A stretch of DNA of 64,000 bases from Oikopleura dioica (taxonomy: Eukaryota; Animalia; Chordata), in contig OU015568.1 in the NCBI GenBank assembly GCA_907165135.1, forward strand, positions 2,418,001-2,482,000, in the 5' to 3' direction. How positions within the stretch are numbered: the stretch's first letter is position 1; the number at the start of each line of letters is the position of its first letter. Under the pieces are notes generated by a model. It did not search any database and was not told the origin of the DNA. It worked only from the letters and a program-made list of their open reading frames with translations. Both the position numbers and the translations under genes were made by a program. Below are positions 4,124 to 59,300 of the stretch, piece by piece.

Positions 4124-4616
4124 CAGGGCTGGATATTTTGAAATCAGCAAAAATCTCAAATCGATTTTTGTGTGAAATCTCATTTTCATTTCAAAATTTT
4201 GCACCATTTCAACAAATTTCAAATTTCAATTTTATTGCAACTCCCTCGTCATTATTTTTCTTTTTTGAAATTGCTGAAATTTCAGAATCTCAAATCTCAA
4301 AATTTTGCAAACCGCGCAATGGCCGCAGACAAACGTCGCGGGCTTAGAGCAAGACTTGTGATTGGTTCAGATGGACCTGAAATGCTTGAGATCTCAGAAT
4401 TTCAAATTTCATTTCATTGCAACGCGCGTATCCAACTCACGCAGTTTTCTGAGATAATTGAGATCTCAGCATTTCAAATATCATTTTTTTGCAAAATCGA
4501 AAATTGAGATCTCAAACAGAAAATTTTCTGAGATTGCATTTTTGAAATGGATGAGATGACGATTCATGTTTTTTCGGGGTTTGAGATTTTTGTTGATTTC
4601 AAAATATCCAGCCCTG
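4124..4616. mobile_element. hAT-type MITE (493 bp) with 37-bp TIRs and 8-bp TSD
   Basis: TIRs cagggctggatattttgaaatcagcaaaaatctcaaa and tttgagatttttgttgatttcaaaatatccagccctg match at 36/37. Direct repeat gtgcaatg lies at 4116-4123 and 4617-4624. CAGGG termini with an 8-bp TSD are typical of hAT elements. Confidence 0.92.
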
Positions 4617-8321: not shown

Positions 8322-11300
8322 ATGCTGGTAATGAGTGCGAATTATCAGCATGCTTATCGTGCAGCACAAATATCACTAATTCTTTCTTCAACACAAAAAT
8401 TACGCTTATGATGAATGGATTTACACTAAAAGTCACTGCATTGGTCGACAGCGGATCTGACAAATGTATTTTGCCAATGCATCTCCTTCCATCGTCACTT
8501 CACAAGTTTATCGAGCCAACTTCAATGGAATTCCGCGGATGTGGAAGAATAAAATCAATTGGTAGGATATCCGCAATAGTGAAAGCTCACCAATCAAATT
8601 ACAAATTCCGCGGTGTATGCTTTTACATCGTGAGAGAAGGTTTGCCGGCAATCCTCGGCAAAGATTTTATCATAGGACACTCAAGCAGCGAGCACGGAAA
8701 CTTCAAAATCGCCGGTTATGGAATGGAAATAATGATTCACTCTGGCCGAAGGGTCCTATTCCCTTGGTCAGAAGTCAACGCGCTGTTTAGGATGGAAGTC
8801 AGCAAATTAACGACGCAGCAAAAGGTGGAACTACGGGAGAAAACGAAAGAACTAAAACTCGACAACACTATCTTCAAAGGTGAAAATTTCGAACGATTCA
8901 TCAACATCCTCTTCCGAAAGCAAAAAGTTTTCAAAGGGCCAAACGATAAAGTAGGCCTGTTTTCGGAGCAAGTGAGGATCCCGACAATCCCTGGATTAAC
9001 GAAAAGCGCTCGACCGCGGCCAATAGCCAAACATCTGCAACCGAAAGTAGATGGTAAGATGGAAACGATGCTCAATGGGAAGATAATCGAGGAGTGCCCC
9101 GACGGAAAGGGTTTTCACAGTCCACTAGTCATTGTCCCTAAAAAAGACGACGATATAAGAGTATGCTCCGATTTCAAGTCCGGGCTTAACCAGTGCCTCA
9201 CAGAGGAGACGGACATCTGGAACGTGCCAAATATAGATTGTTTGTTTGCGGACATGGAGACTGGAAACCACATCTTCTCTGACATTGATATAAACGCGGC
9301 ATATTGGAACATGGAAATCCACCCAGACGACCGACATAAAACGAATTTTTATTATAAGGACAAGCTGTATCAGTACATCAGAATGCCGTTTGGAATGAAA
9401 CACAGCGGCGACGCATTTTGCAAATGTGTCGCAAAAATGCTAGGGACGGTGAAGCTACAAAACAACTTCAAAAGCTATGTGGATGATATATTGCTACATA
9501 GCCGTGACGAAGAAACGCATCTTCAGGTCTTGGAGCAGGTTTTGGATGCCTGCGAAAAATTCGGCGTCAAGCTGGGGGGAAAAAAGTGCAATTTCGGCCG
9601 GCGATCAACAAAATTCATGGGCCGACAAATTTCCGCGGAAGGGATAAGCATCCCAGAAGAAAACATGAAAGCAATAAAGGAATTGCAGCCACCGCGGAAC
9701 AGGAAGGAATTAATGTCAGTCCTCGGAACCCTTGGTTGGTGGAAAAGCTGGATCTCATGCAACGTTGGTGACCGAGTGGCCATCAACTCATTCAGCTCAA
9801 TCGTCAAAGAAATGTCTGTGCTGAACAGGCAAAATAAACCATTTCAGTGGAATGACGACGCTCAAGCGAGCTTCGATAACGCAAAAAGGATCTTGGCAAG
9901 TAATAAGGTATTTAGTCTCCTGATTTTTCTCGACCATTTGTGGTCGTTTGCGATGCATCCAAAGTGGCTATTGGAGGAGCCATTATGCAAAAATTCGGCA
10001 ACAAACAAAAACTGATCGCCGTTTATTCGAAAACACTGTCGTCAACAGAATCGAAATGGTCAACGACGGAACGAGAAGCTTTCGCACTATTGATGACAAT
10101 CGAGAAATTTTCATATTATTTGGAGGGAAAGCCATTCTTATGCCTCACCGATCACAAAGCTTTATGCGCCTTGGACAAGAAAATAATGGCAAACGACAAG
10201 CTCCAAAGATGGCAAGATCGACTCAGTAAGTTTCGATTTACAATTCAGTACATTAAAGGACAAGACAATTGCCTGGCAGATATATTGTCACGACCGTGGC
10301 ACAAAGTCTGTGCGAAAAACGAAAAACCAAGCGACGAACTGGCAGGAAAATTCTACAATCCGGCCGGAGAGAGCGACCTCATAATTTATATCCCGTCATG
10401 GTGCGGTGGTGAAAGTTTACCACAGAAAATGCTCCTCGAAAACAAAGAAGTCGCCGCGGAAATTTATGCTTTAAAATCAGCTGCCACAGGAGTTCTGAGC
10501 GAAAACGTACCTATCCTGGAGCTGCGGATAATTGAAAATGCTCAATCAGAAGATAAACTCATAGGTACAGTAAAAAACTTTGTAGAAAACAAAATATCCG
10601 CGGAAAAATGGCAAGTCCCAGATAGTCTTTACGGCATAGAATCATACAAACGCTGGTCGAAAAAATTGGAAATCCATCCGGAGAGTAAAGCCTTGACGAT
10701 CAACTGGGGGGGAAAAGAAGTGCCTTGTGCTTCCCAAAAGCCTTATTCCTCACTATTTAAAAGCTGCTCATCACAAAGCGCACACCGGAGTTGATCGAAC
10801 AAGGGAATTGCTATCATGGTCGTGGTGGCCCGACCAATTGGACGATATCCGCGGATTTGTCTCAAGTTGCGACATTTGCCTGAAAAGAAAAGGCCAGGAC
10901 ATGCAGAAAGGTAAACCAGATATGCAGACCCTTTACCGTGCCAAGCGACCATGGGAAATCATTTATGTCGACTTTATACAACTCGAGCGATCGAAAACCG
11001 GTAAATCATACGCATTAACCATTATGGATGGATACAGTCGTTTCTTGTCAGTTTATCCGACTGCGAGGTGCCGAGCAAGTGACGCTGCTCGCCAAATTAT
11101 GCGTCACATTCTATTGTACGATTTCCCGAAGATTATCAGCAGCGACCAAGGTAAACATTTCCGAAATGAAATGCTGAGTGAGCTTTGTCATTTGCTTGGA
11201 GTCAAGCAGAATTTACATGTTCCTTATCGCCCGGAAAGTACTGGATGCCTAGAGCGATCGCACCGTGTTCTCAAAAATGCGTTATATGGAATCGCCTTGG

Positions 11301-11917
11301 AACGAAATCTGTGTTGGGAATTAGTTCTACCATCAGTGGTGAGTACTATGAATAAATGCAAAAATGTGGCAACGCGCGTCTCGCCATTCGAAATTATTTA
11401 CGGAAGAAAACCTTCGTTCGACGGAATACAAATGGCCGAAAACCCATCCGCGGATTCTCCAAAAACGTACGCCACTGAAATAGCCGCGACCCTAAGCCGC
11501 GTCCACAAGCTCGTCGATTTAGCTCAATCGGAAGCAGACCTCGTCGCTAAAAATAAGGGAAAATCTATAATTGAACCAATAACGATAACCAAAGGCGACA
11601 GAGTTCTGCTAAAAAGACCCATGTCCGCGGAAACGAAGGAGAGCAAGGGCGCTTGGAATGGACCCTTTGAAGTGGTGGACACTAATGGCGTTATAGTTCG
11701 ACTGGACATTAGTGGAAAGCTCAGTTGGGTACACCGACATCACTGTATTCTCTACAAGGACCGTCCACAGCACCTGGACCCGGATTATTGCGGCCAAAAT
11801 CAACCCGAGAACCCCGTTGTTAAGAAACGACCCGACGCTGAACCGGCCTCATCGTTCACCGAAAGATATCCGCGGCGCGCCCGGAAAAAGACTGTACCTT
11901 TCCAAGCAAGATCATAA
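8303..11917 (+). CDS. pol: Pol polyprotein (aspartic protease, RT, RNase H, integrase) with two 1-nt frameshifts
   Basis: Protease ALVDSGSD; RT YVDD; RNase H CDAS...ERE...TDH...LADILSR; integrase HHKAH...CDIC, VDF...SDQG...E; GPF motif WNGPFEVV. The frame is open from 8303. Frame breaks fall at CC 9919-9920 and G7 10706-10712. Confidence 0.95.
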
Positions 11918-34677: not shown

Positions 34678-37600
34678 ATGCCGAGAAAACAGCGCTCGAG
34701 AAAAGACCGAAAGAAAAACAACAACAAGCAGCAGCAACAACAACAGCAAAATAACGAATCTAAGAAAGAACCAGAAAGAGAGCCCTCTGAAAAGGTAGGA
34801 TGTGATAAGCTGACTTTAATTTATGGCGACGAGGGTTTTTTTAAAGTCTCGCATGTTGGCCCGGAGCCAACAGGGCAACCCGGCTTGGTCGGGAAGTTAA
34901 AAAATGTATTGAAAAAATTCTTTATTTTTTCCTGTTTTGGGAATTCGGGACAGAGAAACTCAAATAACAATTGTTATTTGTTACTCACAATGCATTTTGC
35001 AGAGTTTTTCAAGAACTATCAGAAATTGGTTGTAAGAAATATTCTCGAGATTTCTAAATATTTAAAATCAGCTCAATTAAATACAGTGAAAACCCAAAAT
35101 TTGCCCACCCAAAATTTGGCCGCTTTTTGTCTAAATCCGCTTTTTTTGGAACCTGAAATCAACCCGAAATTTTGCCGTTTTTTTGAAAATAAAAAAATTT
35201 TCATCAGAATTGGGCTCAAATGATGCTAATCCGATCATTTTTAGCTTTTAAAAACTGTTTTAGTCATTAAAAATGACTAAATTCTCATAAGAATGTCTTT
35301 AAACAAGCAAAAATTTGACTAAAATTCATCAAAAATGTGAAAATCATGCCGATTTTCGAAAATTTCGAAACTTTGCCTTTTGAAGGGGAAACTTGGCTAC
35401 CCGGCAAAAAACCCAAAATTTGGCCGCTTTTTTCGGAAATTTATATCTGAAAACCGGCCAATTTTCGGGTTTTCACTGTAATGAATTAAAAAAATGAAAT
35501 CTACAATTTGCGTCAAATTTACATTAAATCCGCAATTTTTATCCATCTTATTTTAAGGAATCCGAAAATAGAGGAAATGAAGCCACTCAACCCGAAAACA
35601 TCCAACCCATTGTGGATGAGCCTCTTCCTGAGATTCCATCAGCTTTGACCGGCAGTTTGGTCGAGGGACAGTCGCAAATTGACCTGCTGAACGCTTTAGA
35701 AGAAGATGTTCCGCTTGCTCAAACTTCAGATCATACACTTGCTGTTACCCAAGATAAACTCGAGTTCGAATCAGGTCCGGATGCATAAATTGGAGATTAG
35801 CAAAGGCAATGATTTTGGCAAAATCGGACAGCGTGTTCGCTATTCTAGCCATATATGCTATATAATAAAGAGCCACTCCTATAATTTATTAGCTATAAAT
35901 TTATGATAGATATGCGATTTCTTCAGAGAATACGATTTTTTTAAGAACTCGACATATATTTTTATTGGAATAAAATTTAATGAGACTATAGGAGATATGC
36001 TCTGATGAACAGGATTTAAGATTCTCTTGAAAAAAAGCAAGTTCACAATGCCCTGTATCAAAATCTAATTTTAGCATCCTAGAATTAAGAAATAGACAAA
36101 GAAGAATCTCCACCACAAGAAACAATCATCACCATCCCAGAAGCTAGGGTCGGACCCCTTACTAAGGTTTCCTTAGTTACTAAGGGTAAGGATTTTAAAA
36201 TTGATGAAAATCAAGAAAGGCCTAAGGAAGGACTAAGGGCCTTCCTTACTAAGGCCTTAGTAACCTTAGTAAGGATCTGATTAAATGCGATTCGATAAAA
36301 TGTTCTTATTGATAAAAATAGCAATAATTTAAGTTTATTTGGTATTTTCTGCTGTCAGTAAGTTGACAAGAGACATTTTTATAGAATTCCTTCACAACTG
36401 GTCCTTAATTTCCTTCCTTACCAAGGCTTTTGCAAAGGTATTTTTGATAAAAGCGCTCTCAAACTGCGTAGGCCGTCGAAAAAATCCTTTTTAAAATCCT
36501 TAGTAAGGAAAGGAATTAAGGAAAAATCGCTAAGGATTGAAGATCCTTACTAAGGACCTCTGAAAACTAACAAAGGAACTATGGTAAGGATTTTTTTCCG
36601 CCGAAATCCGAAAAAGGGTAAGGAAGTAATCCTTACCTTACTAAGGTAAGGACCCTTAGTAAGCAAAAAAATAAGGAAGGAAGTCCGACCCTAGCCCAGA
36701 AGTCCAAGACGAGATCCCCCCAGAAGCAAGTGTAGTCGTCGAGGAGCCAAAGAGTGAGTCGAAACAGGAAAAAGAAGAATTCGAAGCTCGGTCTTTGGAA
36801 GTCTTCCAAAAGCTCTTCAAATCGCCGGTGAAATGTAATTTTCCGCTGCCGAATAGCGCTCTGAATGCGTCGGTTTTCGAAGCTTCAAATCCTCCTCTAC
36901 CAGGTCAGTATGAGCGAAGAATCCTGGCAAGAAACCTGAGTCAGGGTTCACAAAAGCTATTAAAGAAAAGCCCCTCAACGTCAACTTATTTCTAGCCATT
37001 TCGTTGTCTCACGAAAACTACTTCGACTCTCGTCCGATTCTCTCGAAAAGCGCAAATGAAGCAGAAGCTCCAGATGCCATCGTCCCGATTTCATCAAAGC
37101 GCAATCTCTTCCTGGACGAGTTCGATGCCAATCTCTCCGATTCTCATTCGCTTCCTGAAAACGATGCTAATTCAAATGCCATGTTCGAGTCCATGCCCGA
37201 TTTAGAACAAGAATCTGAAGATGATGGTGATGAAAATCGAGCAATTGAGGAAGGAATCAGCGCGCTATCAATAGAAGCTGCGGTAGAAGAAGTTCTTGAT
37301 TCGGACGATGAACAATCAAGTGAAAGAATTTCTCGTCGTCTTGATCAAAATCATCCGTTGCTGACCTTCGAATGCGAGTTCAACCCGATGGATTCTGAAT
37401 CCGATTCTGAAGAGATTCAAATTCAAAACGAAGAAGAGTACCCACATATCGAAGAACATCAGTTATGGAAAGGAGATCATGTGCATCAAGAAGAGCATCA
37501 GTGTCAACAATCAGATGAATTTGATCAATTACGGGAAGAGCCTATCGGAAATAAGCAATTTGTCGATTCAAATTCTATTTCTGATGAAGATCAATTTATT

Positions 37601-40267
37601 GAGGTAATTCTATCTACCTCAATCGTTCAGAATAAGAAAAATACCGAGAAAGTAGTTTAAGTATAACCGTGGCATTTTTCCCATTTGATGCCTTCATTAA
37701 ATTTTCAGGAAAAGCCGGCTCCAATCGCCGCTTTCTCTCCCTCCCCAGAACCGAACCTCATCGACTTCCCAGTTCCGAAAGAAGAAGAAGAAGAAGATCT
37801 ATTCTCCCCACCTCGTTCCGTTTCTCCTCCGATTATTCAAACGATTCCTACACAAGCAGCAATCAACACGAATTTGTTAGCTCAAGACGAGATATCGTTC
37901 AAAAACGACTTTGATTACGAAAGCATCATTTCTTCTTTTAAAAACAATGGAGCAGAAAATGCGTTGATGGGAAGTGCGTCTATGCATAATTCTTCGATAA
38001 TTAGACATCTTGGAAACATGCAAAAACGAGGGGAAGGAGTCGATCTGGCGCTGGAATCCACGACCGGCGAAAGAATTTGGGTCCATCGCTTTATCCTTGA
38101 AAGCTTTTGTGCCGATTCTTCTCTGTCTACTTTTGGAAGAATCGCCAAATGTCCGTTTGACAACTTCACAATTTCGATCGCCGTCGAGTTTCTTTACAAA
38201 AACCGGCTGTTTCTAACGCTAGAAAACGCAGACATGTACCTCTCCATCTCTGAGTTCTTTGGCGGAATAGAGTGCCTGGAAATGACAATTCTTGAGTTTC
38301 TTTGCCAGTCTATATCTGACGAAAACTACGCCGACATCATGCAAATCGCGGAGAAATACAACAAATCGAATCTACAAGACTTGATTCTCAATAAAATCTG
38401 CGAGAATGTTTCGGACTATCAAAACGAAATTCTGAAACTTTCGCCTGAATCCTTCATTGAACTCATTCGCCGCGACGAACTAAGCGTTAAATCTGAAGAA
38501 GACGTCGTCGAGCTCGTCAAGAAGTGGACAAAAGAAGACGTTAAAAATAGAACGCTTTGGCTGCCAAAGATTCTCGATCACGTGCGTTTCTCGTGTCTCC
38601 AGCCGAATTTCATCGTGACGCAAATCGCCTCAGACGCGATTTTCTCCGGCCCGTGTTCCGCTTCGATCATGCAGGCCATGTCATATCATCTTTTGGGGAA
38701 TGCCAAGTTTGAAAATGACTTGGCAAAGATGTACCCGAGGAATTCGAGCAAGAATATTTGCGTTGTCGGTGAGTTACGATCACTGAACAGGAAGTAGTTT
38801 TCAACACTTTTTTCAGGTTATACTCGTGACAATACTCAAATCTCCGGCCTGAAGAACTCGCAATGGATTAATTTCGACTCTTCCTGTATTCCCCCTTCTT
38901 TGACTTCCTTTCAAACTGTGACAGTCGAGGGATTCATTTTCATCATTGGCGGCGAGGTGCAAAACTCATCCACTGGCGCCAAGGTTTCCTCAAAATCAGT
39001 TTACATCTACGATCCACGGTAACACCTGCGCTAGATTCTTTAAAAATGATTTCCATATAATTTTAGTCTCGAAGAAATTCGAGAAACTACTCCAATGAGC
39101 TACGGCAGAACGCATTTTTCGGCCGTTTATGTAAGCAGCGGGAAGATTTTCGTTTTTGGCGGGCGAAATAGCGAGACTGGCATTTTGCGAGAGAACGAAG
39201 TTTATGACATCAAATCTGCGAAGTGGACCAGCATCCGGCCTTTGGAACATGGCCGCTGCTCCCATGATGCCTCAGTTGTTGGCGCGAATGTTGTTCTGAC
39301 AGGAGGATATGTTCAGGTTTTAAAACTTTCTTTAAAAAGTCCTAAAGAAATAATTATCCTTTTATAAGTTGTTAAATGAAATGATTAGGAACGAAACGGC
39401 AGGACTAAATACACAAGTTCTGTGATCATGTTCGATACCATCTGCGGGCTTTGGAAGCAAATTGGCGATTTGACAACCCCACGAGGATGGCACAAGAGCA
39501 TCGTGTACCAGGATGAAATTTATGTTTTCGGCGGATACTACCAAGTAGGCAAAATTTATGATATTATGTTATGGATAGAATCATTCGCAATTAGAGCATG
39601 TAAGCAAATGTCTATTTTTGAAAATGTATATTTTCTGCTTGAAGAACTTGCGAGTAAAATTGAATTTCAAAATATTAATTTTATCGTTTTAGAACGCCAC
39701 TCAAAGAATAACTGTCGCTCCGGTTGAAAGAATATCGCTAACCGGATCAACTCAGACGATCGATTTGGACTTGATAATCAACTCGTCGCCAGGTACATCT
39801 TTTTATCGGAATCGCACTACGAAGTAAAGGGCCCTTAGTCTATACCTCGATAATATTTATTATCAGCCTGTCTACTTTTCCCCACGTCTGAAGGTGTTCA
39901 TTACATGGACCTTTGTAATATTTATGTTAGATAGAATATTGTGGTCTAATTCTTTCCTTTCAGGTATTGCGCTAGATGGTAATCAAGTGTATATTACCGG
40001 CGGCTGGGATGAGAAATGGAGGAGATTCTCTCAGGTACGTCATGAATTTCATGAATTGAATTGAAAATGGAAGTCTGATAATTGCGGATTATCCGTATTA
40101 TTTCTTCCTTCCCGTGAACGTATTTGATCTGTCTAAAGCTGAGACTCTAAATTCTTCCATTTCAGATTTGCTTCAAAGTAGATCTGGACACCTTTACCGT
40201 CGAAAAGCTCGAAATGCGACTGCAGAATTCGGTCAACTTCCACCAAACCACTTTTGTTCAATTTTGA
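34678..40267 (+). CDS. BTB-BACK-Kelch (KLHL-family) protein with long acidic N-terminal extension; exon 3 interrupted by a MITE
   Basis: BTB (ERIWVHRFIL...VEFLY), BACK (LSVKSEEDVVELVKKW...LDHVRF) and Kelch repeats (FIIGG, FVFGG, VLTGG, YVFGG, YITGG). Apart from the insertion at 36144-36694, the introns traced are phase-consistent GT-AG. Confidence 0.88.
35084..35479. mobile_element. Tc1/mariner-like MITE (396 bp) in intron 1 of the Kelch gene
   Basis: CAGTG...CACTG termini with ~19-bp imperfect TIRs (cagtgaaaacccaaaattt vs cagtgaaaaacccgaaaatt); TA on both sides (35082-35083 and 35480-35481). Confidence 0.8.
36144..36694. mobile_element. hAT-type MITE (551 bp) with 12-bp TIRs and 8-bp TSD, inside a coding exon
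   Basis: TIRs ctagggtcggac / gtccgaccctag; TSD cccagaag at 36136-36143 and 36695-36702; many internal ccttactaagg / ccttagtaagg subterminal motifs. Confidence 0.93.
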
Positions 40268-43503: not shown

Positions 43504-44405
43504 CGTTTATATTTTGACTTTAAGAAACTCGATGCGGAATAAGATAAAAGTCCGGTCGGAAAATAACAATATTATCGGTCTTTAGGGCCGATCGGTTGTT
43601 TTATTGAAATTAGCAATTTCTTGATGTAGCAGAAGAAAGAAGCGACGTTTTAGTTTTGATATTGCAGGTGGGATTGTCTTCACTGGAGGCTTTCAGTCCA
43701 AGAAAGTCTTCGATGATGATGTTTTCAAATTTTAAAAGGTCAAGCATGCTTAGGGTTTTTCACGGAACGGCGCGGCCCGCTCTGGGGTCCATCCACGAAT
43801 ATTAAAAGTCTTCTATTGAAGCAAAATTGATAATTCAAAAAATGAAACGTACTAATTCAAGGGAATAGATTCATAATATTGCATTTGTTTTTCTTTCGAA
43901 TGCAAGAATTCGCTGTAAGACGGTTTTTCTTACTCAATTTCGACTTTTGTATCTGAGTACATCAAAATACACTCTCTATTTTCAAATATGTAGGAAATAA
44001 GATGTTTAATTTTCAGCTCTCAAAATTTGGGATTTCGGAAACTTTCGGAAGGTGTTCAAATCGTCAGATAAGTGAGTGAAAGTGACTGCGCGCTAGTGCT
44101 TTACGCCGCTGCGCGGGACGCCCAAAAAGCATTAGCGCGCGCCATAATCCCAGCGGGTGGTTTCTATGACCTAGTATCCCAAATCTGATGCGAATTACAC
44201 CGTGTGATTTGCACAAACAATTTCCCGGAAGTGTCAAGCTTCGTATTTGAGATGAATTAGACGGATTTATATCACTCGGAACAACAAAACTGATGAGATC
44301 TTTTTTTATCATCCTTATCATTATTGCACCACCACCAGGTCAGAATTTTTAATTATTTTCAGATATTTGAAATCAGCAGCTCAAGTAACACTTATTTTGA
44401 AATTT

Positions 44406-45797
44406 TCAGGCCCATTGAATGATATACCACTTTCCGTGAAAAACCCTAAGCATGCTGCCCTCATTTTTCTGGTGCCGGTCGATGAGGATCGAAAAAACGA
44501 CGGAATATGCACTCTCTCCGGTGACCTGAGCGATTCGCTTAGAAAGACGATCCAGGTCTGCGGATGATTTTGTTCGTGTGATAAGATACTCGCGGGATTC
44601 TAGCTTTTCCATCGCGAAAACCATATCCAACCTGAAGGATGAAAAAATGGAAATACAAGCATTTATCTTACTGTGAGGTAAGAAAGTCGATATTTTTATC
44701 ATCGTAGATAGTCTTCTGAACAATATATTATTAAAATTCTGCAGCTTGGTTAGTCCCGCATGGTCTAGGGGTTAGGATTCCGGATTCTCACTCCGGCGGC
44801 CCGGGTTCGATTCCCGGTGCGGGAGGACTTTTTGAGTCATCGGCCCGAAGTACCGTTTTGAGCCGATGTCGGGCCATTTTTACCTTGATCCTTGCTAATT
44901 CTAGCTCAACTTGAAAATCCTCGGAGAAGGGAATGAAGCCGTAGAAGTTGTAAAGATCGAAATCTGTTTTCGAAGTCCCATAGTTGACAAAAAGTTCATG
45001 TCCTTTAGCGATTTTCGTTTTGGCGAAGATTTCAAACGCTGTCTTCTGTTGATTCCATCTGTATTCGCAGTTGAAGTCCTGGTGGTGGTTTATCAAATCG
45101 ATAGCTGGACAAAGGACGAAATCCGCAGAGTTTTCGACTTCAATCTTCATCCCTCCTTCGTCCTTACATCGTTCTGGAGAGCCACTAAAGCTCCGACTGA
45201 GAATAACTGAAAAGCACCAGTCTAATGTCTCCTTGTTGATTTCATTCCTTCAAAAATTTATGAAGGCCAAAGAAAATTGCTGTAGCTGTACTTGTTTTGA
45301 TGAAGGAAATTTGATGCTACTTTCAGCTTTTGTTTCAGACATTTGGAAGGTAATCTGACTTTAGCTGTGAGCAAATTGAGCTCCTTATCCTCGAGCATGA
45401 AAGGATTCCAGAGCTCATCGGGAATCGACTCCAAAAAAGCTCTCCACTTCGAATCGGGCTTTGAAAACTCAAGATAGATGGCAACGACGAGAAGGTCCGT
45501 CCCGTTGAGAGAGAATCTTTCTAGAATGAACTCAGTTATGAACCTTTCACGTGGTCAGAATTTACTGAGTTGAGAGACTGATTTATCGCTCTCGATGACG
45601 TGCTGCGCTTTTCTTGTCGTTAGCAAGGCGTTGATAGGCACACTGAAATACAGTTCATCCTTTATTATAGACGGGTTGGGAACATATCGCTACAGAAATA
45701 TGGTCAACCTGATGAGAAGCTCATTTTCTTCGATCGACGATTCGCAAAAGACCCCACGACCGAAATTTCCAGCGTCAAGTTTTATTTTTTCTGACAT
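44406..45797 (-). CDS. SET-domain methyltransferase of the Rubisco-LSMT/SETD3/4/6 class (SETD4-like)
   Basis: FGRGVFCESSIEENELLISVP; SKWRAFLESIP; LCPAIDLINH; ELFVNYG...YNFYGF; GT-AG introns. Confidence 0.82.
44754..44825 (+). tRNA. tRNA-Glu (anticodon CTC)
   Basis: Acceptor stem TCCCGCA/TGCGGGA; anticodon arm CCGGA-TT CTC AC-TCCGG; T-loop GGTTCGATTCC; 72 nt; T5 Pol III terminator at 44829-44833. Confidence 0.95.
44829..44833 (+). terminator. RNA polymerase III terminator (T5) of tRNA-Glu
   Basis: TTTTT run starting 4 nt after the tRNA 3' end. Confidence 0.75.
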
Positions 45798-47311: not shown

Positions 47312-50300
47312 TTAGTCGTCCAGCGAGCAGAGTGCGCAGACACCTCGTTTGACCCAGTGAGCTTGAGGGAGGTCTGAAAAGAAGAAACGGTTAAGGGGGA
47401 GTCGTATTGGATTACGAGTTACCTGATTTGAGCTTGAGGAAGAGGACGAAGTTGGTAGAGTGACCGGTCGTGGAGAGGGTACCCTAAAGTTGATGATTAT
47501 AAAAAGCAGCGGTAGTTTAAATCTCACCTTTCGTTCTGATGTCTTGTAAGTCGGGCACTCGTAGCATCCGTCCATGGAAATCTCGACCTTCTTCATCGGC
47601 TTGAACCAAATGATGGGCATCGATTCGAAAAGGATCTTGTGATGGGATTCGACCAGAGATCCGCGCTCACGGTCCCATCGGGCTCCTTCGAGGTAAACAC
47701 CGGCGCAGTAGACACCATCGTCTGGCTGTGGAAGGGGGTTTGACCAGAACTGTTTTGGGAATCCTGTTTTTCGGAAATTTTAATTTAGCAACTTTCAAAA
47801 AACAAAAAAAAAATAATCAAGAAGGGTGAAAATTTCTAAAATTTCAAAGAATCATGATTTTGAAATTGAATCAATTGAGAATCATGCGATTTGATGAGAA
47901 CGAAATAAGAAAGATAATTTCTTATTCTTAAAAAATGATTTTCGTGATTTTGGTAGTCATGCTTTTTTGGCAAACCTCCCGGCAGGTCGGCTGTGTCCTT
48001 TGGAAGGACTTCAAAGTCGAACTCGACGGCGTCGATAGGGATGGTGTATCGTCGGGCAAAGTTCTGTCTTGCACCAGTCAAGAAAGCCTTGAAAAGGGAT
48101 GAGGATATATTTTGAGAATTATTATTTTACCTGAGTGAAGTAGAAACCAGAGAGCCAGAAGACAGTTGGCTTGCCGTTTTCGTACCATTCTTGGAAGAAG
48201 TTCAATCTGAAAAACAATTCTTGAGCTTGATTTTCGAAGAGAAAAAAGTTTACCTGGCGAGGAAATCGGTGATGTATCCAGCAAGAGGCTTGAGCGAGGG
48301 ATAGGATCGTTTCATCCAAGCATCGGGGACTTTACCAATGAGCAGAGCTCGGGCGATATTTTCTAACTCGGCGTTCATGACAATGAAACCGGCGATGGCT
48401 TTCTTCATGTTGATGAGGGAGATTCGGATGGTGCGGAGCAAGTTGTTGAATCGCTCCATTTCTTGGACGAGGACAGTGTTCATGGACTCGTTGTACTCGA
48501 CGGGGAATCGCTTCATTGCCGCGTCCAAGTCGAAATCGGCCGGCAGTTTGCCGAGGATATCGTTGACGATATCGCTGAGGGCTTCGTCCGAGCCACCGCC
48601 GCCTCCACCGCCAGCAGTAGCACCAGTGGTGAGGAGAATCGAGTCAAAGACCATCTTCGTTTCTTGCAATTCCTTGGTGATGTTGACGTTGTCGTGCATT
48701 CCGAAGATCTCGGGAACTTGCTCGGGAATCGTTCGGATGAACTCGAGGTAGTGATCGTAGTCGCCATCTGGTGGAATGTGGAAGAGACCGGAAGGACAGA
48801 GCTTGTGCTGGTTCTGGTGAACGACTTCGCGGGAGTAGAAGATTCGGAGGAGATCCATCAGCAATCTTCGATCCTTGTCGTCAGTAACTCGACCACCGTA
48901 GTTACACTCACCTGTGAGGTAAGTAATCGCCTCGTATGGAATTTCTTCGTACTGATTCATGAAGATCTGCAGCTGACGCACAGAAATTCGCATATCAGAC
49001 TCGTTGAATCCATAGGCGATATTCCAACCGATTGGACCAAACTTTCTTCGCTCCTGGACAAGAGCGTGGAAGAAACAAAGAGAGAAAAGCAGTCGGGTGA
49101 AGGCGGATTGTTTTTCTTCGGCAACACCAGCAAAGAAAACAGGATCAGAGATTGGATCGGCCAGGTAAGAAGCGAGAATGTTGTTCTTGAGACCAGTGGG
49201 AGGCTCATTTGTCATTTTGACGGAGTTCTGAAGGACCGAAACGGGGAATTTGTCGGATGGGTAAGAAGTAAGCCAGAGTCGGAAATCGGGGTGAATGTTC
49301 TCGGGGTTCATCTCTTCGCAAAGACGCTCCATCGCGGGCATCCATGAGACTGCCAAGTGACAGTTCTGAAGACAGACCCAGGAGCCATTCTCCATCGCAG
49401 CCTTGATCATTCGCATGGCAATTGGACCCTGTCCCTGACCAAGCGAGATAGCGCCGAATTTATCTCCATCCATGGACATTTGGGAGGCAAATTTGAGTAG
49501 AGCCGCCATAGGATCGGCACCAGGGGAAAGAACGAAAACAATTGGTGAATCGCAAGAGGAATCGTTGAAAGATCCGTGCAGATCGAAAGGTGGTGGGGAG
49601 ACAAAGATGTTTCCGAGCTTTTCGCTGATGAACTTTGACATGGCGGGAATGGCCTTGTCAGGTCGGAGACATCGAACGATGATCATTTTCTGCATTGGGG
49701 TGAGTTTCTCATTCCAGGGCGCGGGGTACTCGACATTGAAGGGAGTAGCGGAATCGTAAACGGCCTTCCATGACTCACAATCGGATGTGAACGAGCTTAG
49801 GAAGCCAGTAAACTGAGACAAATCAGACATACGGCAGATTTCGTCCCAGCTCTTGTCGGAGAGCCAGCCGGAGGACGGATTGGCCTTGGTGTTTTCCAAA
49901 CCGACACCGCCAGTGAGGAAGAACATAAGCTCTTCGTTGGTGAGTTCATTCTTTGACTTGAGGATGTTAGTGCAGAGAATGAAGGAGAAAAGAAGTTTGT
50001 CCTTTTCGAAAAGCGATCGGCAGACGTTACAGTACAAACTGTAAGTGAAGAAGTCCTTGAGGTAGCGAAGACGCTTCTCCAAGTTCTTGGTCTTGTTAGA
50101 ATCTTTGATGGCTCGAACATAGAGATTTACGAACCATTCAAGTGAGTACTGGTACATAGGATCGATGTTGGGCAACTCGGTGAGTGAGAAGAAGAGAACG
50201 GACGAGTGGAAGGCCACTGGTCGGTATCCTTCTCGAGATTCCTTGATCTTAACTTCGGTTTCTTCGGCGATCTTCTGTTTCTTTTCGATTTCGTTAGAAA

Positions 50301-53300
50301 TGACCTTGGCTTCGTCGAGGACGGCGATGGCACCTTCATCTTCGAGAATGTTTCCTTCTGAAGCAGAAAGAGTGTACAGAATTTTGTCCTCAATTTCTTT
50401 CAGCGCCTTTTTATTTGCAGCAGATTGAAGAATGAGCTGCTGTCGCTCTTCTTCGAGCTCAGGTCGTTCTTTCGCGACGACGATACCGAGAAGCTGATCT
50501 TCAAGACCATCGGGAGTGATCATGAAGTTCAGAAGGGAGACTTTCGTGGCAAGCTCAGGGAGATAGTGAGGATTTCGAAGCTTTGTTGTGATGTAAAACT
50601 TGAACTCGGAGGAGTACTCAATGACGGACTCACCAAGTTTGATCATATCAACACCAGCTTGTCGGAAAACTTGCTTCAAGAGCAAAGGCTCGAGCGAAGG
50701 ATCGAGTTCTTCACCAACGTTTTCAAGGAGAACGGGCGTACCGAATTGGATAGAGTTTTCAAGCGTTCGCATGAAGTTTCCGTCGGTAAGTTTGATGATT
50801 TCGATACCGTTTTCCTTCTCCATATTTCGGATCCACTTGTTAGCCTGTCCCTGAGGATCGATCAAGAGTGGCCATCGACGGGAGTTGTCAATGATGACAC
50901 CATTGTCGCAGGAGAAGCTATCAGTGGGCAAGCCATTGATGTTATTTTCTCGGATCTTGATTGGGTCACCGAGAACGTTAGAGACGGAGAACTCTTTCGA
51001 GCATGTGATATTACGCTGAGTACACTCGTTCGACCAGTTGGCGATGATTCGTGTTCGGAAAGAAGCGACGAATGGACCAAGATAGGCGACAACACCGGAA
51101 GAAATGAGGACATCACCAGTGAGATTGTCGTACTGCTGCTGGAGTCGTTCAGCTGCTTCACCCCATCGAGTCTTTTCACCACCGAGACCGCCAATAAGCT
51201 TGTTGGCTCGGATGAGTTTCTTTTCACAAAGATCGACCTGGAATTCGAGCTGCTGTTTCTTGTCAGTAGCAGCCTGGAAATCAGCGTTAAGCTTGGCAAG
51301 TCGGTCCTGGACCTCCTTGAGTTCAGCCTGCTTGGTAGCAAGAAGAGCCATGGTTTCCTTGAGAGAAGCTTCGGCGACGGCGAGAGCGGCCTTTTTGGGA
51401 GCGACGACCTTGGCAACTCGATCGTAGATTTCCATAGCCAGTACCCACTTACAGAGACCCTCAGCGGCTGATGAGGATTTCTTGGCGTTCTCTGGGGTGA
51501 AATCAGGATTGGGCTTGTAGTCGGCTCGGATTTTCTTCATGACGGCTTCGGGAATGTTGTCCTTATCGTAAGATTTGAGTCGGGCGAGGAAACCAAGATC
51601 GGAAAGAAGCTTCTTCGAGGGGCCCCAGTAATCGTTGACCTTCTTGGTACCACCGTTTGGATCGTTGATCTTGTCGGGTTTCACTTCCAACATAATACAC
51701 ACACCTTCCATGACAAGCTTGACACCAGCGGGTGGATTGGACATAGTCTTGATGACACCAATATCAGCTGGTTTAATAGTGTCGAGGGCTTTCAGGGCGG
51801 ATTCAAGTGCGGGGATAGCTTCAGCAAGCTCTTCCTCACATTCCTGTTTCATCGCAGCGGATTTTTGCGCCTCAGCGTTCGCCTCGGCTTCATCTTTCAA
51901 GACAACAACAGTCTTTGCCTCTACCTCAGCGGTTTCAACTGTGATGACTTCCATAAGCTCAGCGTTTTCTTTCGAAGCGATGACGAGCTGCGGCTGGAGA
52001 TCTTCAAGCTCTTTCTGCATAGTAGCGACCTGCTCTTCTGCAAAAGCGAGTTTTTCGAGACCGACGACGTATCGATTTCGAGCCTTAAGGACAATATCTC
52101 GCTGGTTTCCAAGAAGATTCTTGAAAGAAGCGATCAATTCCAAATACGAGATTGGAGTCACATAGTTGTGTCGACCAAGTTCGCGGAGATAGTCATGTGA
52201 CAGTTCTCGAGCAGAGACGTGGAAGTGCTTGCAAATCGGGATGATTTCTTTTCGCTCGTGAGCGGAGAGCTCAACTTCTTCGAGGAAGTGGTTGGCGACT
52301 CGCTCGAGGGCTTCTTCGGGCCAGGCCTTGAACCAATCGATAGTACAACAGTTGATAAGGGAGGGGAACTGTCGAAGACGCTCTCTGAAGGCATCACCAA
52401 TCGGCGAGAAAGCGATGATAATATGGAGATTTTCCTTGCATCGCTGGACGAAGAAGTTAAACATTTCAAGTGGAGAAAGATCAGCATCTTTTCCAAATCG
52501 CTGGGCGATAACTGGTCGGACGAGTTCGATGAGTTCTTGCTTCTCATCAGCTGCGTAGAGATTGGCAACTTCACCGGTGTTAAGAAGAGAATCGATGTCT
52601 TCGAGGAAAGACTCTTCTTTGATCTGCGAATCAGTGATGAGGAAGATCATTTTCTTACCAAGACCACCAGCGTTCTTGAGCAGAGCTTTGATATCATCTC
52701 GCCACTCTGGGACACCGTAGGTCTTCGAAATTTCAGGCTGGAAGGTGCTCATGCCAGCCATGAAGCCAGCAAGGCGGGTGAGAGACTGTCGACCGGAACC
52801 ACCGACACCAACAAGGAGGGCATTTCCACCAGGAGACTTCAGGACTCGACAGATTCGAGAAAGATGCTCGAGCACGTATCTGAAGATTACGAGGGAGAGC
52901 GGAGCCTTGTTAACAGCGTTGTACTCTTCAATCGATGTCTGGACGACTTCCTGGAATTCCGTGAGCGAAGTGATTTCTTTGTAAAGACGATCGTCGCCTT
53001 CAGCGCCGAGTTCCATGTAATCACCGAAAATGAGCGATCGACAATCTTCTTCAGAAACTGGTCGACCACCCTGTTTCAAGTGAGTGAAGACTTTATCGAA
53101 GTCTTTTGAGAAGTAAGTCTTTGTGACTTCCTTCAGCAGTTTGAAGAGCCAGGCACCGTCAGAATCATCGACAAGTCGATCGTAGAAGACTCGGAAGATT
53201 TCGTGAACGAAGAGTCGAGTCATGTAGTCTTTGTCTGGCACAGTATCTTTCTTCACAACGAGACAACCCATAATGACACGGGAGAAATCTCGCAAGTTGA

Positions 53301-56300
53301 AGATGTAATGTGACTTGGCCGGTGTGGGGAGAAGGTTTTCCATTGCCTGTTTGTAGATAAAAGTCGTGGCTTCGACGATTGGCTTGGTGACGCCCTTGAT
53401 GTCGCCGGAGAAGTTGTTAGCGCTGAAGTAGCCATCCATGATCGTGCCGAAGATCTTCGACATAGTGTCATCTGAGAATGGCAACATGGTGATCAAATTA
53501 AAGTGACGGAGGAATCGCTGGGTGACGACCTGTCGGGAACCACCGGGTGGACCCATTGCGCCCATGAAGAGAATATCCTGGAGACCGATAGGAGAAGTAT
53601 CTTGAAGATCGTACCACTGGTGATGATCCAAGTACTGTCTCATCAATTCAATAGGAGGCTGTGCGCCGTAGATTTCTCGGGTAGGCATGTTCAAATCATC
53701 GACAAAGATGATGGCCTTCTTTTGAGCTGGAGGACCGTACACACCTTTTCTTCGCTTGTCCAACCGACTCATGATCAAATTCTGGGTTTGCTGAGCGGTG
53801 GTTTTGGCGGAGAAGTTAATAAAGTTTGTGACAAACTTATCTTCGGGGATGCCAGTCATGAGTTTGCCCTTGACGTAAGCAGATTTACCGGTACCAGTTG
53901 GCCCACAGAAGAGAACTGGTCGATCGTGCATGACACAGACGTGGATCAAGTAATGAGTTCGAGCAGTGTCCATCGTTGGGACGATGACGTTCTGAAGATT
54001 GTCGCCTGGTCGGATGTCGACGCCGCTCTTTCCCTGAAGGAGTTTGTTCCAGCTAGTCCAAGAGCCCATTCCTTCAATCTTGAAATAGGTGTCGTAGACG
54101 TAATCGGAAACAGGGTTCTCGATCTTGGTGATGCCTTCTGGTGGTGGGTAGTCCTCATGTTTGCCCTTCTGCATGGTGAGAATGAAATCAGAGAACTTGG
54201 CTCGCGAGTCCAAATCGCAAGAAGCAGCGATTGACCAGATAAGAGAGAAGATGAAAACACCGTGAATCCAGGATTTCATGTTTTTCTTGGCGTTGTCTTG
54301 GGCACAGACTTCAGCGTCGAGGTGCATCTCGAACATGTACATGAGCGATCGGACCTGCTGCATGTCAGTGGTGACGAGGACTTCCTTGCACTTCTTTCGC
54401 AAGAATTCCAAGGATGGATCGATGAACCATTCGAAAAGGCCATTAATAAGCTCGCTGTGCTCTTGAATCACTTCTGGGAGGGTCAAAAGCCAGGATTTGA
54501 ACATTGGTCGCCAACCGATGGATCGAGGCTCCATGTAAATCATACCACATCGGGAGACAGTGGCGGGAGAGGCTTGCGAAAGATCTTGGGTTTCGAAAAT
54601 GAGCGACATCTCGGGAGTACATTGGATAATCTCACCAGACATGAGACACAGTTTTTTGTTATCATCGAGTACGGTGTTCATAGACTCAATCCAAAGGGTA
54701 TCAATGGGACCGTCGAAAAGGACCCACTTTCGATCGCTAGTTGGCGTGGAAGCGAACTGTCGGAAGATTGTGGCGACGTTTCCATCGGACCATTCGTGAG
54801 AAACGGGATCGAATTGACCGAAAAGCTGTCCCATGGTGATAGCTTTAGGGTTCACAGTTTTGTACTTGACTTTTTCGACCAAGTTACCGGCCTGTTCGTG
54901 TTGGATCTCATTCATCCTGTTCGACATTTCAGCCAAGACGTGGAGGCATTGAGTTTTTCCGGAAAATGGGTCACCAACCAACATAAAACCGTGACGAACG
55001 ACCATCATTTCGTAAGTCTGGATCAGCTTCTCGAGGAAGGCAGGGACGGGCTGGATGCCAAAGTCGGCGCAAACAGCGTGTGCAGTTTCGAGGAAGACTT
55101 TGTAGTCGGCTTCGGGGAGCTTGATACCGGGGAACAAATCCGAAGTGATACCGTGGAAGAGGGGAATATCGTGCGACAAGAATTTTGGCAAGTTAACATC
55201 GATAATCGATCGGAGAGTCAGGATATCTTCGTTTTCATCTGGGAACTGGAGCTTCAAGTTACCACAGGAGACCAGGACGGCCTTGACGGCTCGCATACCG
55301 TAATCGTAATGGAACTGTGAGGACAGCTGTTCGGAACAAAGTCGGTATGTCATCACGATCTTGACGGACAAGGGCTTGGCATTGAGGAAACCGCATGAGT
55401 AGAGCGAAATCTCCGAAATGAGGGCGTAGTCGGGAACCATCATAGCGACGGTTCGGAAAAGAACCTTCAAGTTATCGGGCAGCTCGGATCGACCAGCGTA
55501 ACCAGGGTTCATAGTGATGGCGACGAAGCAGTTAGGATTGAGTGTCAGTTCGGTGCCTTCGAAGTCAAAGGTCTTAACATCGTTCTGGACGGCGCGCTGG
55601 ATGCACAACATCTGCTGCGCGATGACGGACAAGACTTCAAGTTCGATACGGTTGAACTCATCAAAGCACGCCCAAGCACCAGCAGAGGCAAGACCCTTGA
55701 AGAATTTACCCATAGCGAGGTAATCGAGACCATCGGAACAGTTGAAGACAACACACTGGACGGCGAGGGCCTTGGCCAAATCCTTGGTTGTCTCAGTTTT
55801 ACCGGTACCGGCGGGACCTTCAGGAGCACCACCCAAGTTGAGGTAGAAAGCGCCGACAAGGGTTCGGTAACAACGATCAGTAAGGGGCGTGATGACGAGT
55901 CGGAAGGAGTTTCCGAGGTATTCGTAAGCGTACTTGACGTCGGCGTTGATGATATGGGCCCGGACCTGATCGTTCTGCCAGTAGTAACGGAGTTGAGCCA
56001 GCCAGTTGAAATCGGTCGACAGCTCGACGCCTTGGCTGGCCATGTCGTCGACGACATCACGAGCGTGGACGTCGAGGGTGACGAGAGCACCAAGAGTTGT
56101 TCGAGTTTGTCGAGTGAGCTTGCCTCGGACGAGTTCGACAATGTCCATCAAATCGGAGGTCAATTTCTTTGAATAGTTCTTGAGACCTTGGTTTCCTTCG
56201 TTGTCGATCGATTCCTGGACTTCGGAAGTCCAGAACATTTGGGTGACACCGAGAACGATCTGACCAGGCCATTCCTTGACCCACTGATTTCGCGCTTTCT

Positions 56301-59300
56301 TGACGTAATCGTCCTTGGCGAGGATGAACACGTGACGAACAGAGATGATCATGACTTCTTCGACTTGGAGGAGCCACTTTTCGACGGAACCACGAGCATC
56401 AGAAGTGGAAATAAGGGTGGAAAGACCGACGGATTCGCCTTCGGATGAAATCATTGACTTGATATCCAGGTTGGGCAGGAATTCGAGCTTGGCGATACCT
56501 TCGAAGCACTTTTTCAAGTGAGGCTGCACGCGAGTCGGGTCTTTTGTTTCGGAAAGAATTTCCAACATTTCGTCGTTTGAAAGGAAGAAAAATCTAAAGT
56601 TAAATTTAATTAATAAGCTTAATAAATTGTTATTTCTGCGAAATTTTGCTAAAGCCGGCGGCCTGTTACTGAATTAAAATATTTATAACTTGCTCTGCAG
56701 ATAACTGATTTGCTAATTGATGAATTCCTGCGGAAAAGGACAAAAATAATAATTGATAAATGAAGAGTGCTGCTTGCCTGGGGAAGAACAATCGTTTCTT
56801 TTCCAAATATGCGTTGAGACCTTTCATAATCTTATCTAAAAGATCATTTGACTGAACCATCTTGTTCAAGAAGGTTGAATCTCCACCAACAGCGACGACC
56901 TGAAAGATAAAAACTCAACGACAGTTGTTAAGGTTATCAAAATATTGCGTTGCTGAAAATGCTTCTTCGGGTAAAACAATATAAACGGGCTTATACGATT
57001 CAAAAAATCTGCTTGCAATTAAAAAGATGCATGACTTTATGTACGACATTGTCTAAAATACCTTGAAAAGTAAAGCCGCTTCTTCTCGAGATAGGCATTC
57101 AGCCCTCTCATTATACTTTCTAGGAGCGAAACGCATTCTCGCAGAGTATTCAGCAAGTTAGGAATGTCGTTGGCAACGAGAACCTATTTTTAAAATTATT
57201 AATTATTAAATTAATAATTATATTTTCAGAACTTTCGTATAAACAGGTTTTTTTTAAGACAGCTCCTCAACTGTGGAGCGGTTTTCAGTATCTTTGAATG
57301 GAGATATTTCAATTATCTCTTTTGCATCATGTAGGGGAGGCTCCATAGTGTGTTAAATAAGCTTTTGGTGTGTTCATCTTAATCGGTGGTGGTGCAATGA
57401 CGTCATCATTCCGTAATGCTGCATCTTTTGTCGTCGGCACCCAAAAATTGAAAAGTGGTAAAAAACAATAAACTTATGTTCTTATCGCGCAGACGTCTTC
57501 CTCACATCAGTATAAAGTTTTTCTGATGTTTTCTGGTGTCAGTACAAATGTTGGTGGTGGAGTAATGACGTCATCGCCAATTTTTCCTATGATTTTAGTG
57601 TATTTTTGACTATCTGATTACTCCACCACCAGTGATGGTGTTGACACCAAATCCTTATTTAACACACTACAGACCTTCTATAACAAGATACAAAAGAATG
57701 AATAAAAAAATCTTGACTCCAAGGTATTCAAAATCGCTCCACAGTTGAGGAGCTGTCTTAAAAAAAACCTGTTATAAGAATTTGGTATTTTAGTTTCTTA
57801 GCTTGAAAGTTATGTACGAAAAGACTTACACTTGGGTCGTTCTTCGTTGCAGTCATAACTTCTCTCCAATTCGTATCGACTTGTTTGAACATTCTTCCTT
57901 CCTCAGGCATCTGCGCCATAATATCCTCCGAGGAGAAAATCGGTTCCAAATACAGCCACTGAGACTGCACCTTGAGCCATTCATCCAGAGTGTCCTGAAT
58001 TCTCAACAGTCGCTCTTCCCAGTCTTTAATCTCGCTTTCAATCGGTTTAATGAACGGGGATCCGCGCATCGTTTGTGTCTTGACAATTTGATCGTCCAGC
58101 ATCGTTTGGATTTCGTCCGTACTGGCGAGGATGCAGATGCCGTCTCTGTACTCGACCAAGTTGAACTGGATCGGCTCCCATTCTTCCATCATCTTGTACA
58201 TCGCCTTTTCGAGCGAATGTTCCTTCGTAGCTGCGCCGGAGATGCTCTCGAACTGCTCCATGTATCCTTCAAGTCCCATCTTGAGAATCTTCCTCAGACT
58301 CGTTCCAGCATCAGGAGTCAAATCAAAGCCACAAATGTCAGACATTTGTTTCCAATGTCGCTCCCGGATGCCAGGATTGCAGAGCGTCGCAATCATAGGA
58401 ACATGTTCCTTGAAATTCTTGATATCGTCCATTGTACCAGACGTGAGCTTGACGAGAATGTTGACTGGGGCACCTTTGCCCTTGGCCGTCTTGCCTTTGG
58501 GCTGCTTTTGATCGCCGCCGGCGCGCTTTTCGAAGAGCTTGTTTGATTTGTAGGTTTCTCGGAACATGTCGTCGATTTCGTTGGAGATTTTTTCGGCTTC
58601 CAAGGCAAGGAATTCGCCGTCGAACCACTTTTTCTGCTGCTTCTGCCAGTTTGCAACGTTGTTGTACATGACCTGGTAGGGTTCCAGCTCTTTGGAGAGC
58701 AATTCCAGCGCAGGATATGTCGTTTGCTCCCACTGGAAGAGTTCTTCTTCTCGATTGATCGCTTCGACATTGGCGTTTGCTTGGGCAATGCGTCGTGAGA
58801 TGCCCTGGCAATCTTTGACGTACTGGTGGATGTGTTCTGGATCGCCGCAGTTTTCCAAATCGGCGATTCGTTCTCGCTCGGATTCGATATCCGCGACGAG
58901 TTTTTCTCTTCGCTCTTTGAGCGCGCTCTGTTTCTCGTTCTGCGACTTTTCGATGAGCAGCGAGTTCGCGGCGAAAACCGGCTCGATGTTCGTTGGCCAG
59001 GTGAAGGCGATCGCGGTTCGGAGAAGATCTCCTTCGGGGAAGAAGTGCACGTCCATCATGAACAAGAATCGATCCAGCATCGACATGAGCTGATCATCGA
59101 TGTTCTTGAGCTTGGTTTCCTTGATTTCCTTGATGTAATCCTGGATTTTGACGAGTTCTTCGGTATCTTCTGGCTCTCGCTCGGCACGGTCCTTGATCAC
59201 TTCGAATTCTTTGATGACTCGTTCGACCTCGTGTCGGTGTTTCGAGGCCAGTTTGTTGACGATCGTTTCAGCGTGTCCGCGAGCAGCAGCGATAAGACCA

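Follow-up and report, generated by a model that had tools for sequence, protein, structure and literature searches.

Larvacean tunicates are, to our knowledge, the animals with the fastest intron turnover, and the origin of their new introns is only partly understood. In maize, the hAT elements Ds and Ds1 inserted into exons are spliced from the precursor messenger RNA as imperfect introns and give rise to leaky alleles, the splicing having been shown by complementary DNA. Here we consider a similar configuration in the larvacean Oikopleura dioica, where a 551-bp, hAT-like miniature inverted-repeat transposable element, or MITE, interrupts a coding exon of a BTB-BACK-Kelch gene within a 64,000-nt stretch of contig OU015568.1 (positions 2,418,001 to 2,482,000, forward strand); this whole stretch is referred to as the window, and all the coordinates given below are counted in it. 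The kind of event is already known, the comparators being Ds-type elements spliced from exons, introners and the MITE introns of Fritillaria. With a probability that we put at roughly 0.55, the locus carries a young insertion allele, null or leaky, and not an established intron; the birth of an intron from the element is possible, and the element may be regarded as a candidate only.

The exonisation of Ds1 is among the subjects discussed in PMC5432752. The introners of Aureococcus add 4 nt of the element and 8 nt of the target-site duplication (TSD), that is four residues, to the product (PMC9860276), and introners have also been reported from a tunicate, Styela clava (PMC12130899). Among the larvaceans, Fritillaria borealis has MITE-derived introns with terminal inverted repeats (TIRs), TSDs and species-specific positions (PMC11282704, PMC13326754); these introns have AG/AC or AG/AT ends, and a YAY triplet both precedes the 5' site and stands at the 3' end (PMC13326754). 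The O. dioica genome is compact, its introns turn over at a high rate and its spliceosome is permissive (PMC8008620, PMC4122922); the median intron length is 49 nt, and 11–12% of the introns are not GT-AG (PMC8008620). Intron gain in this species was ascribed in a review mainly to a reverse-splicing-like spread, and MITE-born introns are not described there (PMC4122922).

The element, its host gene and the empty site

The element occupies positions 36144–36694, and its dimensions and coordinates proved to be exactly those given in the preliminary description of this DNA. Its perfect 12-bp TIRs are CTAGGGTCGGAC on the plus strand at 36144–36155 and the reverse complement of CTAGGGTCGGAC, on the minus strand, at 36683–36694 (12/12 matches; counting the adjacent G and C makes it 13), and two perfect plus-strand copies of the 8-bp TSD CCCAGAAG lie at 36136–36143 and 36695–36702 (8/8). 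The last three bases of the right TIR, TAG, could act as a 3' splice site lying precisely at the element end, and the right TSD copy holds the AGs at 36698–36699 and 36701–36702 that have been proposed as acceptors. The length of 551 bp (less than about 800 bp), the TIRs and the TSD are those of a MITE, and so is the coding capacity, with stops in every frame, no ATG-started open reading frame (ORF) and a longest ORF of 51 aa; the GC content is 36%. The MITE structure claimed earlier is thereby borne out. The hAT label that came with it is tentative, being derived from the TSD length and the TIR. The 8-bp TSD, with CCCAGAAG on both sides, fits hAT elements, duplications of this length are also possible for P, Merlin and some other superfamilies, and the TIR reads C-TAGGGTCGGAC, i.e., TAGGG shifted by one base, when compared with the 5'-YARNG end of hAT elements.

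Between positions 36157 and 36664 of the element the palindromic 11-mer CCTTA[C/G]TAAGG is present seven or eight times (14 strand-matches, with 0.59 expected); the rest of the 64-kb window has none. Repeated short subterminal motifs are typical of hAT elements such as Ac/Ds, where they serve as transposase-binding sites, and the 11-mers here are likely to be subterminal repeats of the same kind. The same 11-mer generates the GTAAGG and TACTAAG words of the element. The predicted RNA fold of the element with its duplications has an energy of −200 kcal/mol (z = −10.4), with the two TIRs forming the closing stem.

The host gene lies on the plus strand, with the start codon at 34678 and GT-AG introns at 34796–35557, 35775–36095, 36904–36995 and 37606–37708. 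Exon 2 (35558–35774), which is conserved in a more distant ortholog (L005, see below), ends in phase 1; exon 3 (36096–36903) is split by the element, measures 808 nt (249 nt without the element) and runs from phase 1 to phase 1, in agreement with the phase compatibility asserted earlier, and an alternative acceptor for it lies 6 nt upstream, at 36090. Exon 4 (36996–37605) has an open frame and is acidic and of low complexity, the exon at 37709–38770 encodes the BTB and BACK domains (Pfam BACK 3e-21, BTB 6e-4), and the Kelch-repeat exons extend from about 38817 to 40060 (Pfam Kelch 1e-11); the boundaries of these BTB, BACK and Kelch exons are approximate, as read from the sequence. The domains and the constraint on exon 3 reported below agree with the initial picture of an otherwise open BTB-Kelch gene hit in a coding exon. 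Removal of the element and one TSD copy restores the open frame ...TIITIPE^VQDEIPPE... in exon 3, as had been predicted (^ marks a junction here and below), and the predicted read-through stop, a TGA after 45 foreign codons, is equally in place. This premature stop in exon 3 is followed by at least six further coding exons, as read from the sequence.

The preliminary description had proposed to look for the empty site in other populations, and it was found in related lineages. Two nearly identical marine-metagenome contigs from independent ENA assemblies (L002 and L003), with 80–89% nucleotide identity to the window, carry the orthologous exon; both have the target, CCCCGAAG, in a single copy, lack the element and keep a 314-aa ORF (P0007) open across the junction. 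When the window sequence minus the element was compared with L003, exon 3 had a ratio of nonsynonymous to synonymous divergence (dN/dS) of 0.20 and exon 4 one of 0.27, the synonymous divergence (dS) being 0.33–0.57. Exon 3 is therefore coding and under purifying selection. The paired TIR and TSD positions, on the other side of this comparison, show 0 mismatches out of 20. Set against the dS to the empty-site lineage, this points to an insertion much younger than the split of the two lineages, which is a rough bound, since the TSD is itself coding.

In L005 (75% nucleotide identity) the element is also absent, the sequence around the site cannot be aligned with the window and a 10-residue gap adjoins it, so that the insertion sits in an acidic linker that is little conserved and tolerates indels. 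About 20 residues downstream of the site comes the motif EKEEFEARSLEVF.KLFKSP, which is well conserved. The closest relative, L001 (94% nucleotide identity), stops short of the insertion site, and a search of the JGI metagenomes for same-species alleles with a 21-mer of exon 3 conserved across the lineages gave 0 matches. All close relatives of the Kelch gene come from marine metagenomes, Tara Oceans included. A representative search for annotated full-length orthologs with the 314-aa ORF as the query returned only the query itself, a 92-aa fragment from L005 and one low-complexity match, under a length window that left out full-length protein models; exact-product look-ups of five window ORFs found none on record. 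The insertion is probably polymorphic or present on a single haplotype.

Two further observations concern the same gene. A Tara metagenome scaffold (L004), about 90% identical in exon 3, starts at window position 36702, with which the right TSD copy ends and which marks the insertion boundary; a polymorphism or repeat located there in that population may have broken the assembly, or the agreement may be a coincidence. The 92-nt GT-AG intron 3 (36904–36995) is absent from L002 (at 254–259) and L003 (at 445–450), measures 42 nt in L005 (626–667) and is larger by about 120 bp in L004 (approximately 204–412), a distribution which indicates its precise loss in the lineage of L002 and L003. The gain of this intron in the window lineage was rejected, since an intron occupies the corresponding place in L005, which is more distant.

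The window was scanned for 8-bp direct repeats immediately flanking inverted ends that match at no fewer than 11 of 14 positions, and four places were found, namely three clear elements, the one at 36144–36694 included, and a doubtful one. As 20 block-shuffled windows contained 0 or 1 such structure each (mean about 0.1), the TSD and TIR configuration is far above chance. An assembly artefact or a chance repeat, with the element not truly in the gene of the animal, might be suspected from the presence of only one copy of the element in the window. This explanation is extremely unlikely, however, because the perfect TSD and TIRs exactly bracket the gap relative to the orthologs, which is the signature of transposition, and chance would give about 0.1 of these structures in a window. 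As to the family of the element, blastn against the rest of the window gave no match beyond 30 nt, and the 64 kb contain no autonomous partner that shares the ends of the element and encodes a hAT transposase. The pattern of TIR plus 11-mer had 0 matches in the JGI metagenome contigs and 0 in the GTDB genome contigs, and the seven matches of a relaxed pattern in IMG/VR were all lone 12-mers with neither a partner TIR nor the 11-mer, i.e., chance matches; the host genome was not among these sets.

Possible routes of splicing across the element

The events at the locus may be pictured as follows. A non-autonomous, hAT-like cut-and-paste transposon has recently entered coding exon 3 of the BTB-BACK-Kelch gene, and the default outcome would be a null or leaky allele through the premature stop in this exon. 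Splicing of the GTAAGG donor at 36186 onto one of the AGs of the second TSD copy may rescue a fraction of the transcripts and would add 14–15 residues to the indel-tolerant acidic linker. Of the two possibilities named in the preliminary description, an intron gain under way or a null allele, we lean to the latter.

Among the in-phase candidates for a 5' splice site that precede the first in-frame stop, the strongest is the plus-strand GTAAGG at 36186–36191, in the context AGG^GTAAGG, which corresponds to the consensus donor that had been noticed there. The introns 36186–36699 and 36186–36702 would be 514 and 517 nt long, both in frame and without stops, and would add 15 and 14 residues, respectively; these figures stand as first given, with a correction to the retained peptide, which is ARVGPLTKVSLVTK, with L and not F. 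The GG-AG intron 36148–36694 (547 nt), also proposed earlier, is in frame and without stops as well and would add 4 residues. The arithmetic behind the suggestion that the element could be spliced out in frame is thus right, but it is nearly uninformative. We counted single-intron GN-AG routes that keep the frame and contain no stops and found 251 of them, and a GT-AG route to a terminal AG was still present in half of the dinucleotide shuffles of the 551-bp element that were used as controls. With so many routes at hand, the existence of an in-frame one was rejected as evidence for splicing.

The nine exact-excision registers, in which precisely the element and one TSD copy are taken out, have the ends CC-AG, CC-GC, CA-CC, AG-CC, GA-CA, AA-AG, AG-GA, GC-AA and CT-AG, and 0 of the 9 are of the GN-AG type. 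The ancestral messenger RNA consequently cannot be regenerated by a GN-AG intron, and any GN-AG removal must leave a footprint.

The features of the 3' end argue against a clean use of the TSD acceptors. The donor at 36186 is followed by 44 competing candidate AGs. In the 20 nt upstream of the terminal AGs there are only 1–2 T, as compared with 4–13 T in ten bona fide acceptors of the window that served as the reference for T and pyrimidine content. An internal acceptor-like site on the plus strand, with a T-rich tract followed by CAG (36334–36358; 14 pyrimidines, 12 of them T, in 20 nt), is among the best candidate AGs by its tract and the best of those ending in CAG, and it rivals the terminal AGs; joined to the donor at 36186, it would bring a TGA in frame two codons past the junction, as read from the sequence. 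The last AG of the element itself (36694, TAG^) combined with the same donor leaves 50 nt and shifts the frame. The AGs that are needed lie 5 and 8 nt past this position, and the in-frame rescue therefore depends on this particular TSD. The poverty in T of the terminal AGs, the 44 competitors, the better internal acceptor at 36358 and the out-of-frame position of 36694 are among the reasons for which we favour a null or leaky allele.

The same evidence bears on the idea that a functional intron has already been born by partial exonisation, with the donor at 36186 spliced to the AG at 36699 or 36702, 15 or 14 extra residues and a functional allele. In its favour, both routes are in frame and without stops, the donor is among the strongest in the window, a branch-like TACTAAG word lies at 36639, about 55–60 nt upstream of the TSD AGs, the insertion falls in a non-conserved segment, and the geometry in which the 5' site comes from the element and the 3' site from the TSD is documented for introners (PMC9860276, PMC11282704). 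On the other hand, the AG at 36694, only 5–8 nt before the TSD AGs, would cause a frameshift, the stretch from the branch-like word to the TSD holds about ten more AGs, a better acceptor is available at 36358, and the frame is kept only through the sequence of this TSD, the site-independent joining of 36186 to the element end being a frameshift with 50 nt left. We consider a functional intron birth of this type to be unlikely.

A number of observations nevertheless weigh against the null or leaky allele as the whole story. GTAAG occurs in the element 8 times on the plus and 6 times on the minus strand against 0.43 expected, and the branch-point-like TACTAAG 5 and 4 times, respectively, against 0.05. 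If a GTRAG donor is required, an in-frame, stop-free route to a terminal AG is offered by only 2–3% of the dinucleotide shuffles. The genes of the window manage with weak donors (GTCCGG, GTTTGC and GCAAGC) and A-rich acceptors such as AAAAACAG^, and for this reason the weakness of the terminal AGs is not disqualifying. Two of the three young MITEs of the window interrupt open frames, which is easier to understand if such insertions are tolerated. Finally, rapid intron gain and permissive splicing are known in larvaceans (PMC4122922, PMC13326754).

Skipping of transposon-enlarged exons is a common outcome, and the omission of the 808-nt exon 3 would join exon 2 to exon 4 with the loss of 83 residues and with the frame kept, since both boundaries of the exon are in phase 1 and its length without the element is 249 nt. 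Tiny-intron genomes are thought, however, to recognise introns rather than exons, and the lost segment holds the motif that is best conserved across the lineages, EKEEFEARSLEVF.KLFKSP, so that the product may not function. Exon skipping is, in our estimation, quite an unlikely main outcome.

In splicing from TIR to TIR with a non-canonical donor, by the GG-AG route CTAG^GG...CCCTAG^ (36148–36694), 4 nt of the element and 8 nt of the TSD would remain, making 12 nt or four codons (ASPE), and because both sites lie in the symmetrical TIRs the route would depend neither on the insertion site nor on the orientation, turning the family into an introner. The route is in frame and without stops, its footprint equals that of the Aureococcus introners (PMC9860276), non-GT-AG introns make up 11–12% in O. 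dioica (PMC8008620) with one GC-AG intron in the window, and the pairing of the TIRs in the predicted RNA fold would bring the ends together. Against this, GGTCGG fits the 5' consensus only at +1 and +5, whereas the non-canonical GCAAGC of the window keeps AAG at +3 to +5; consensus GTAAGG donors follow 38 nt downstream; a predicted 13-bp duplex would bury both sites; and no further copy of the family was found in the window, the JGI metagenome or the GTDB contigs to show the pattern. Such splicing appears very unlikely to us, and the young insertion allele, null or leaky, remains the preferred reading.

Other young elements and neighbouring genes

About 7 kb away from the Kelch-gene insertion, a second MITE of 698 bp (43751–44448) splits the final coding exon of a SET-domain gene on the minus strand (45150–43610). 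It begins with TAGGG, its TIR is TAGGGTTTTTCACG (14/14), and its TSD AGCATGCT is a perfect palindrome of 8 bp, with the copies at 43743–43750 and 44449–44456. With this MITE removed the frame continues for 43 more codons to a stop, with AATAAA 8 nt later, and the read-through gives 13 foreign residues and then a stop. A third young MITE (4124–4616, 493 bp) begins with CAGGG and has the TIR CAGGGCTGGATATT (14/14), extending over about 37 nt with 2 mismatches, and the perfect 8-bp TSD GTGCAATG; no open frame crosses its site.

The three young MITEs belong to unrelated families, and their presence in the same 64 kb indicates an ongoing transposition that selection has yet to filter, the CAGGG- and TAGGG-ended elements with 8-bp TSDs marking, by their ends, what looks like hAT-like activity in this genome. 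Two out of three in ORFs is what would be expected of unselected insertion in a gene-dense genome, and the proportion fits recent segregating insertions and tolerance via splicing alike. A broader suggestion would be that the hAT-type MITEs of this larvacean genome are introners, removed by the permissive spliceosome in either orientation with a footprint of a few codons; splicing would then be served either by the ends, (C)TAG^GG...CCCTAG^, or by GTAAGG and TACTAAG, the words within the 11-mer. We give this suggestion only a slim chance.

The introns of the window include lengths of about 40–46 nt, and with the exception of one GC-AG intron those examined are GT-AG. The exception belongs to a gene for a DNAH12-like axonemal dynein heavy chain, which contains a single uninterrupted exon of 2772 codons (48250–56568, minus strand), an extreme intron poverty when set against the many introns of the vertebrate gene. 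Among its named relatives the best are those of the tunicates Clavelina and Ciona (70%, versus 67% for vertebrates), and a JGI marine-metagenome protein is 95% identical. Together with the short introns, the GC-AG intron and the marine-metagenome relatives of the Kelch gene, this affinity points to a planktonic tunicate, probably an Oikopleura-like larvacean. Two tandem versions of one exon of about 43 codons are found in this gene on the minus strand, at 57183–57055 and 56902–56777; the latter matches the metagenomic protein P0010 at 90% and the former at 53%, and they are either mutually exclusive exons or an exon with a decaying duplicate. The GC-AG intron (CAG^GCAAGC) follows the exon 56902–56777 and runs from 56776 downward on the minus strand. 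The preceding dynein intron contains a 157-nt inverted repeat (57242–57398 and 57617–57773, 77% complementary), possibly a foldback element. At 7288–11917 there are ORFs of the long-terminal-repeat retroelement type with protease, reverse transcriptase and integrase domains, which may be Tor/gypsy-like.

Significance and comparison with known systems

Being dated and structurally intact, and lying in a coding exon under constraint whose relatives keep the site empty, this MITE makes a clean test case. If the element is spliced, an Oikopleura-type genome, with its GT-AG and G*-AG splicing, would join Fritillaria and the algae as a host of transposon-born introns, and if it is not, the insertion is an ordinary mutation, of interest chiefly as a marker of current hAT activity. 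Should the introner interpretation be true, the MITE-interrupted ORFs at 36144–36694 and 43751–44448 would represent chordate intron births on a generation-scale time.

Maize Ds and Ds1 offer a close parallel: a non-autonomous hAT-type element with an 8-bp TSD has entered a coding exon, donors lie in or near one end and acceptors near the other, and, if spliced, the element would leave a footprint and a leaky allele. The differences are that the host is an animal with tiny introns, that the sequence of the element is unrelated and that the case described here is known from the DNA sequence alone.

The introners of Micromonas, Aureococcus, Symbiodinium and others resemble our element in being MITE-like, with TIRs and TSDs within coding sequence and with both the element and the TSD as sources (potential ones in our case) of splice sites, and the GG-AG route would leave a footprint of the same size and composition as that of the Aureococcus introners (PMC9860276). 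In contrast to our element, of which a single copy is known, introners form many-copy families that are introns. As for the independence from the insertion site that introners have, the GG-AG route within the TIRs leaves 12 nt, whereas the canonical GTAAGG joined to the last AG of the element leaves 50 nt.

With Fritillaria borealis the present case shares a larvacean tunicate host. Unlike there, Fritillaria-type ends occur in 0 of the 9 exact-excision registers, and the introns of the window are GT-AG or GC-AG; an exact non-canonical excision of the Fritillaria type was rejected, as the element ends do not fit it. The surroundings of the element are, on the other hand, of the kind known for the lineage-specific and G[A/C/G]-AG introns of O. 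dioica, the window having introns of 40–46 nt and one GC-AG intron.

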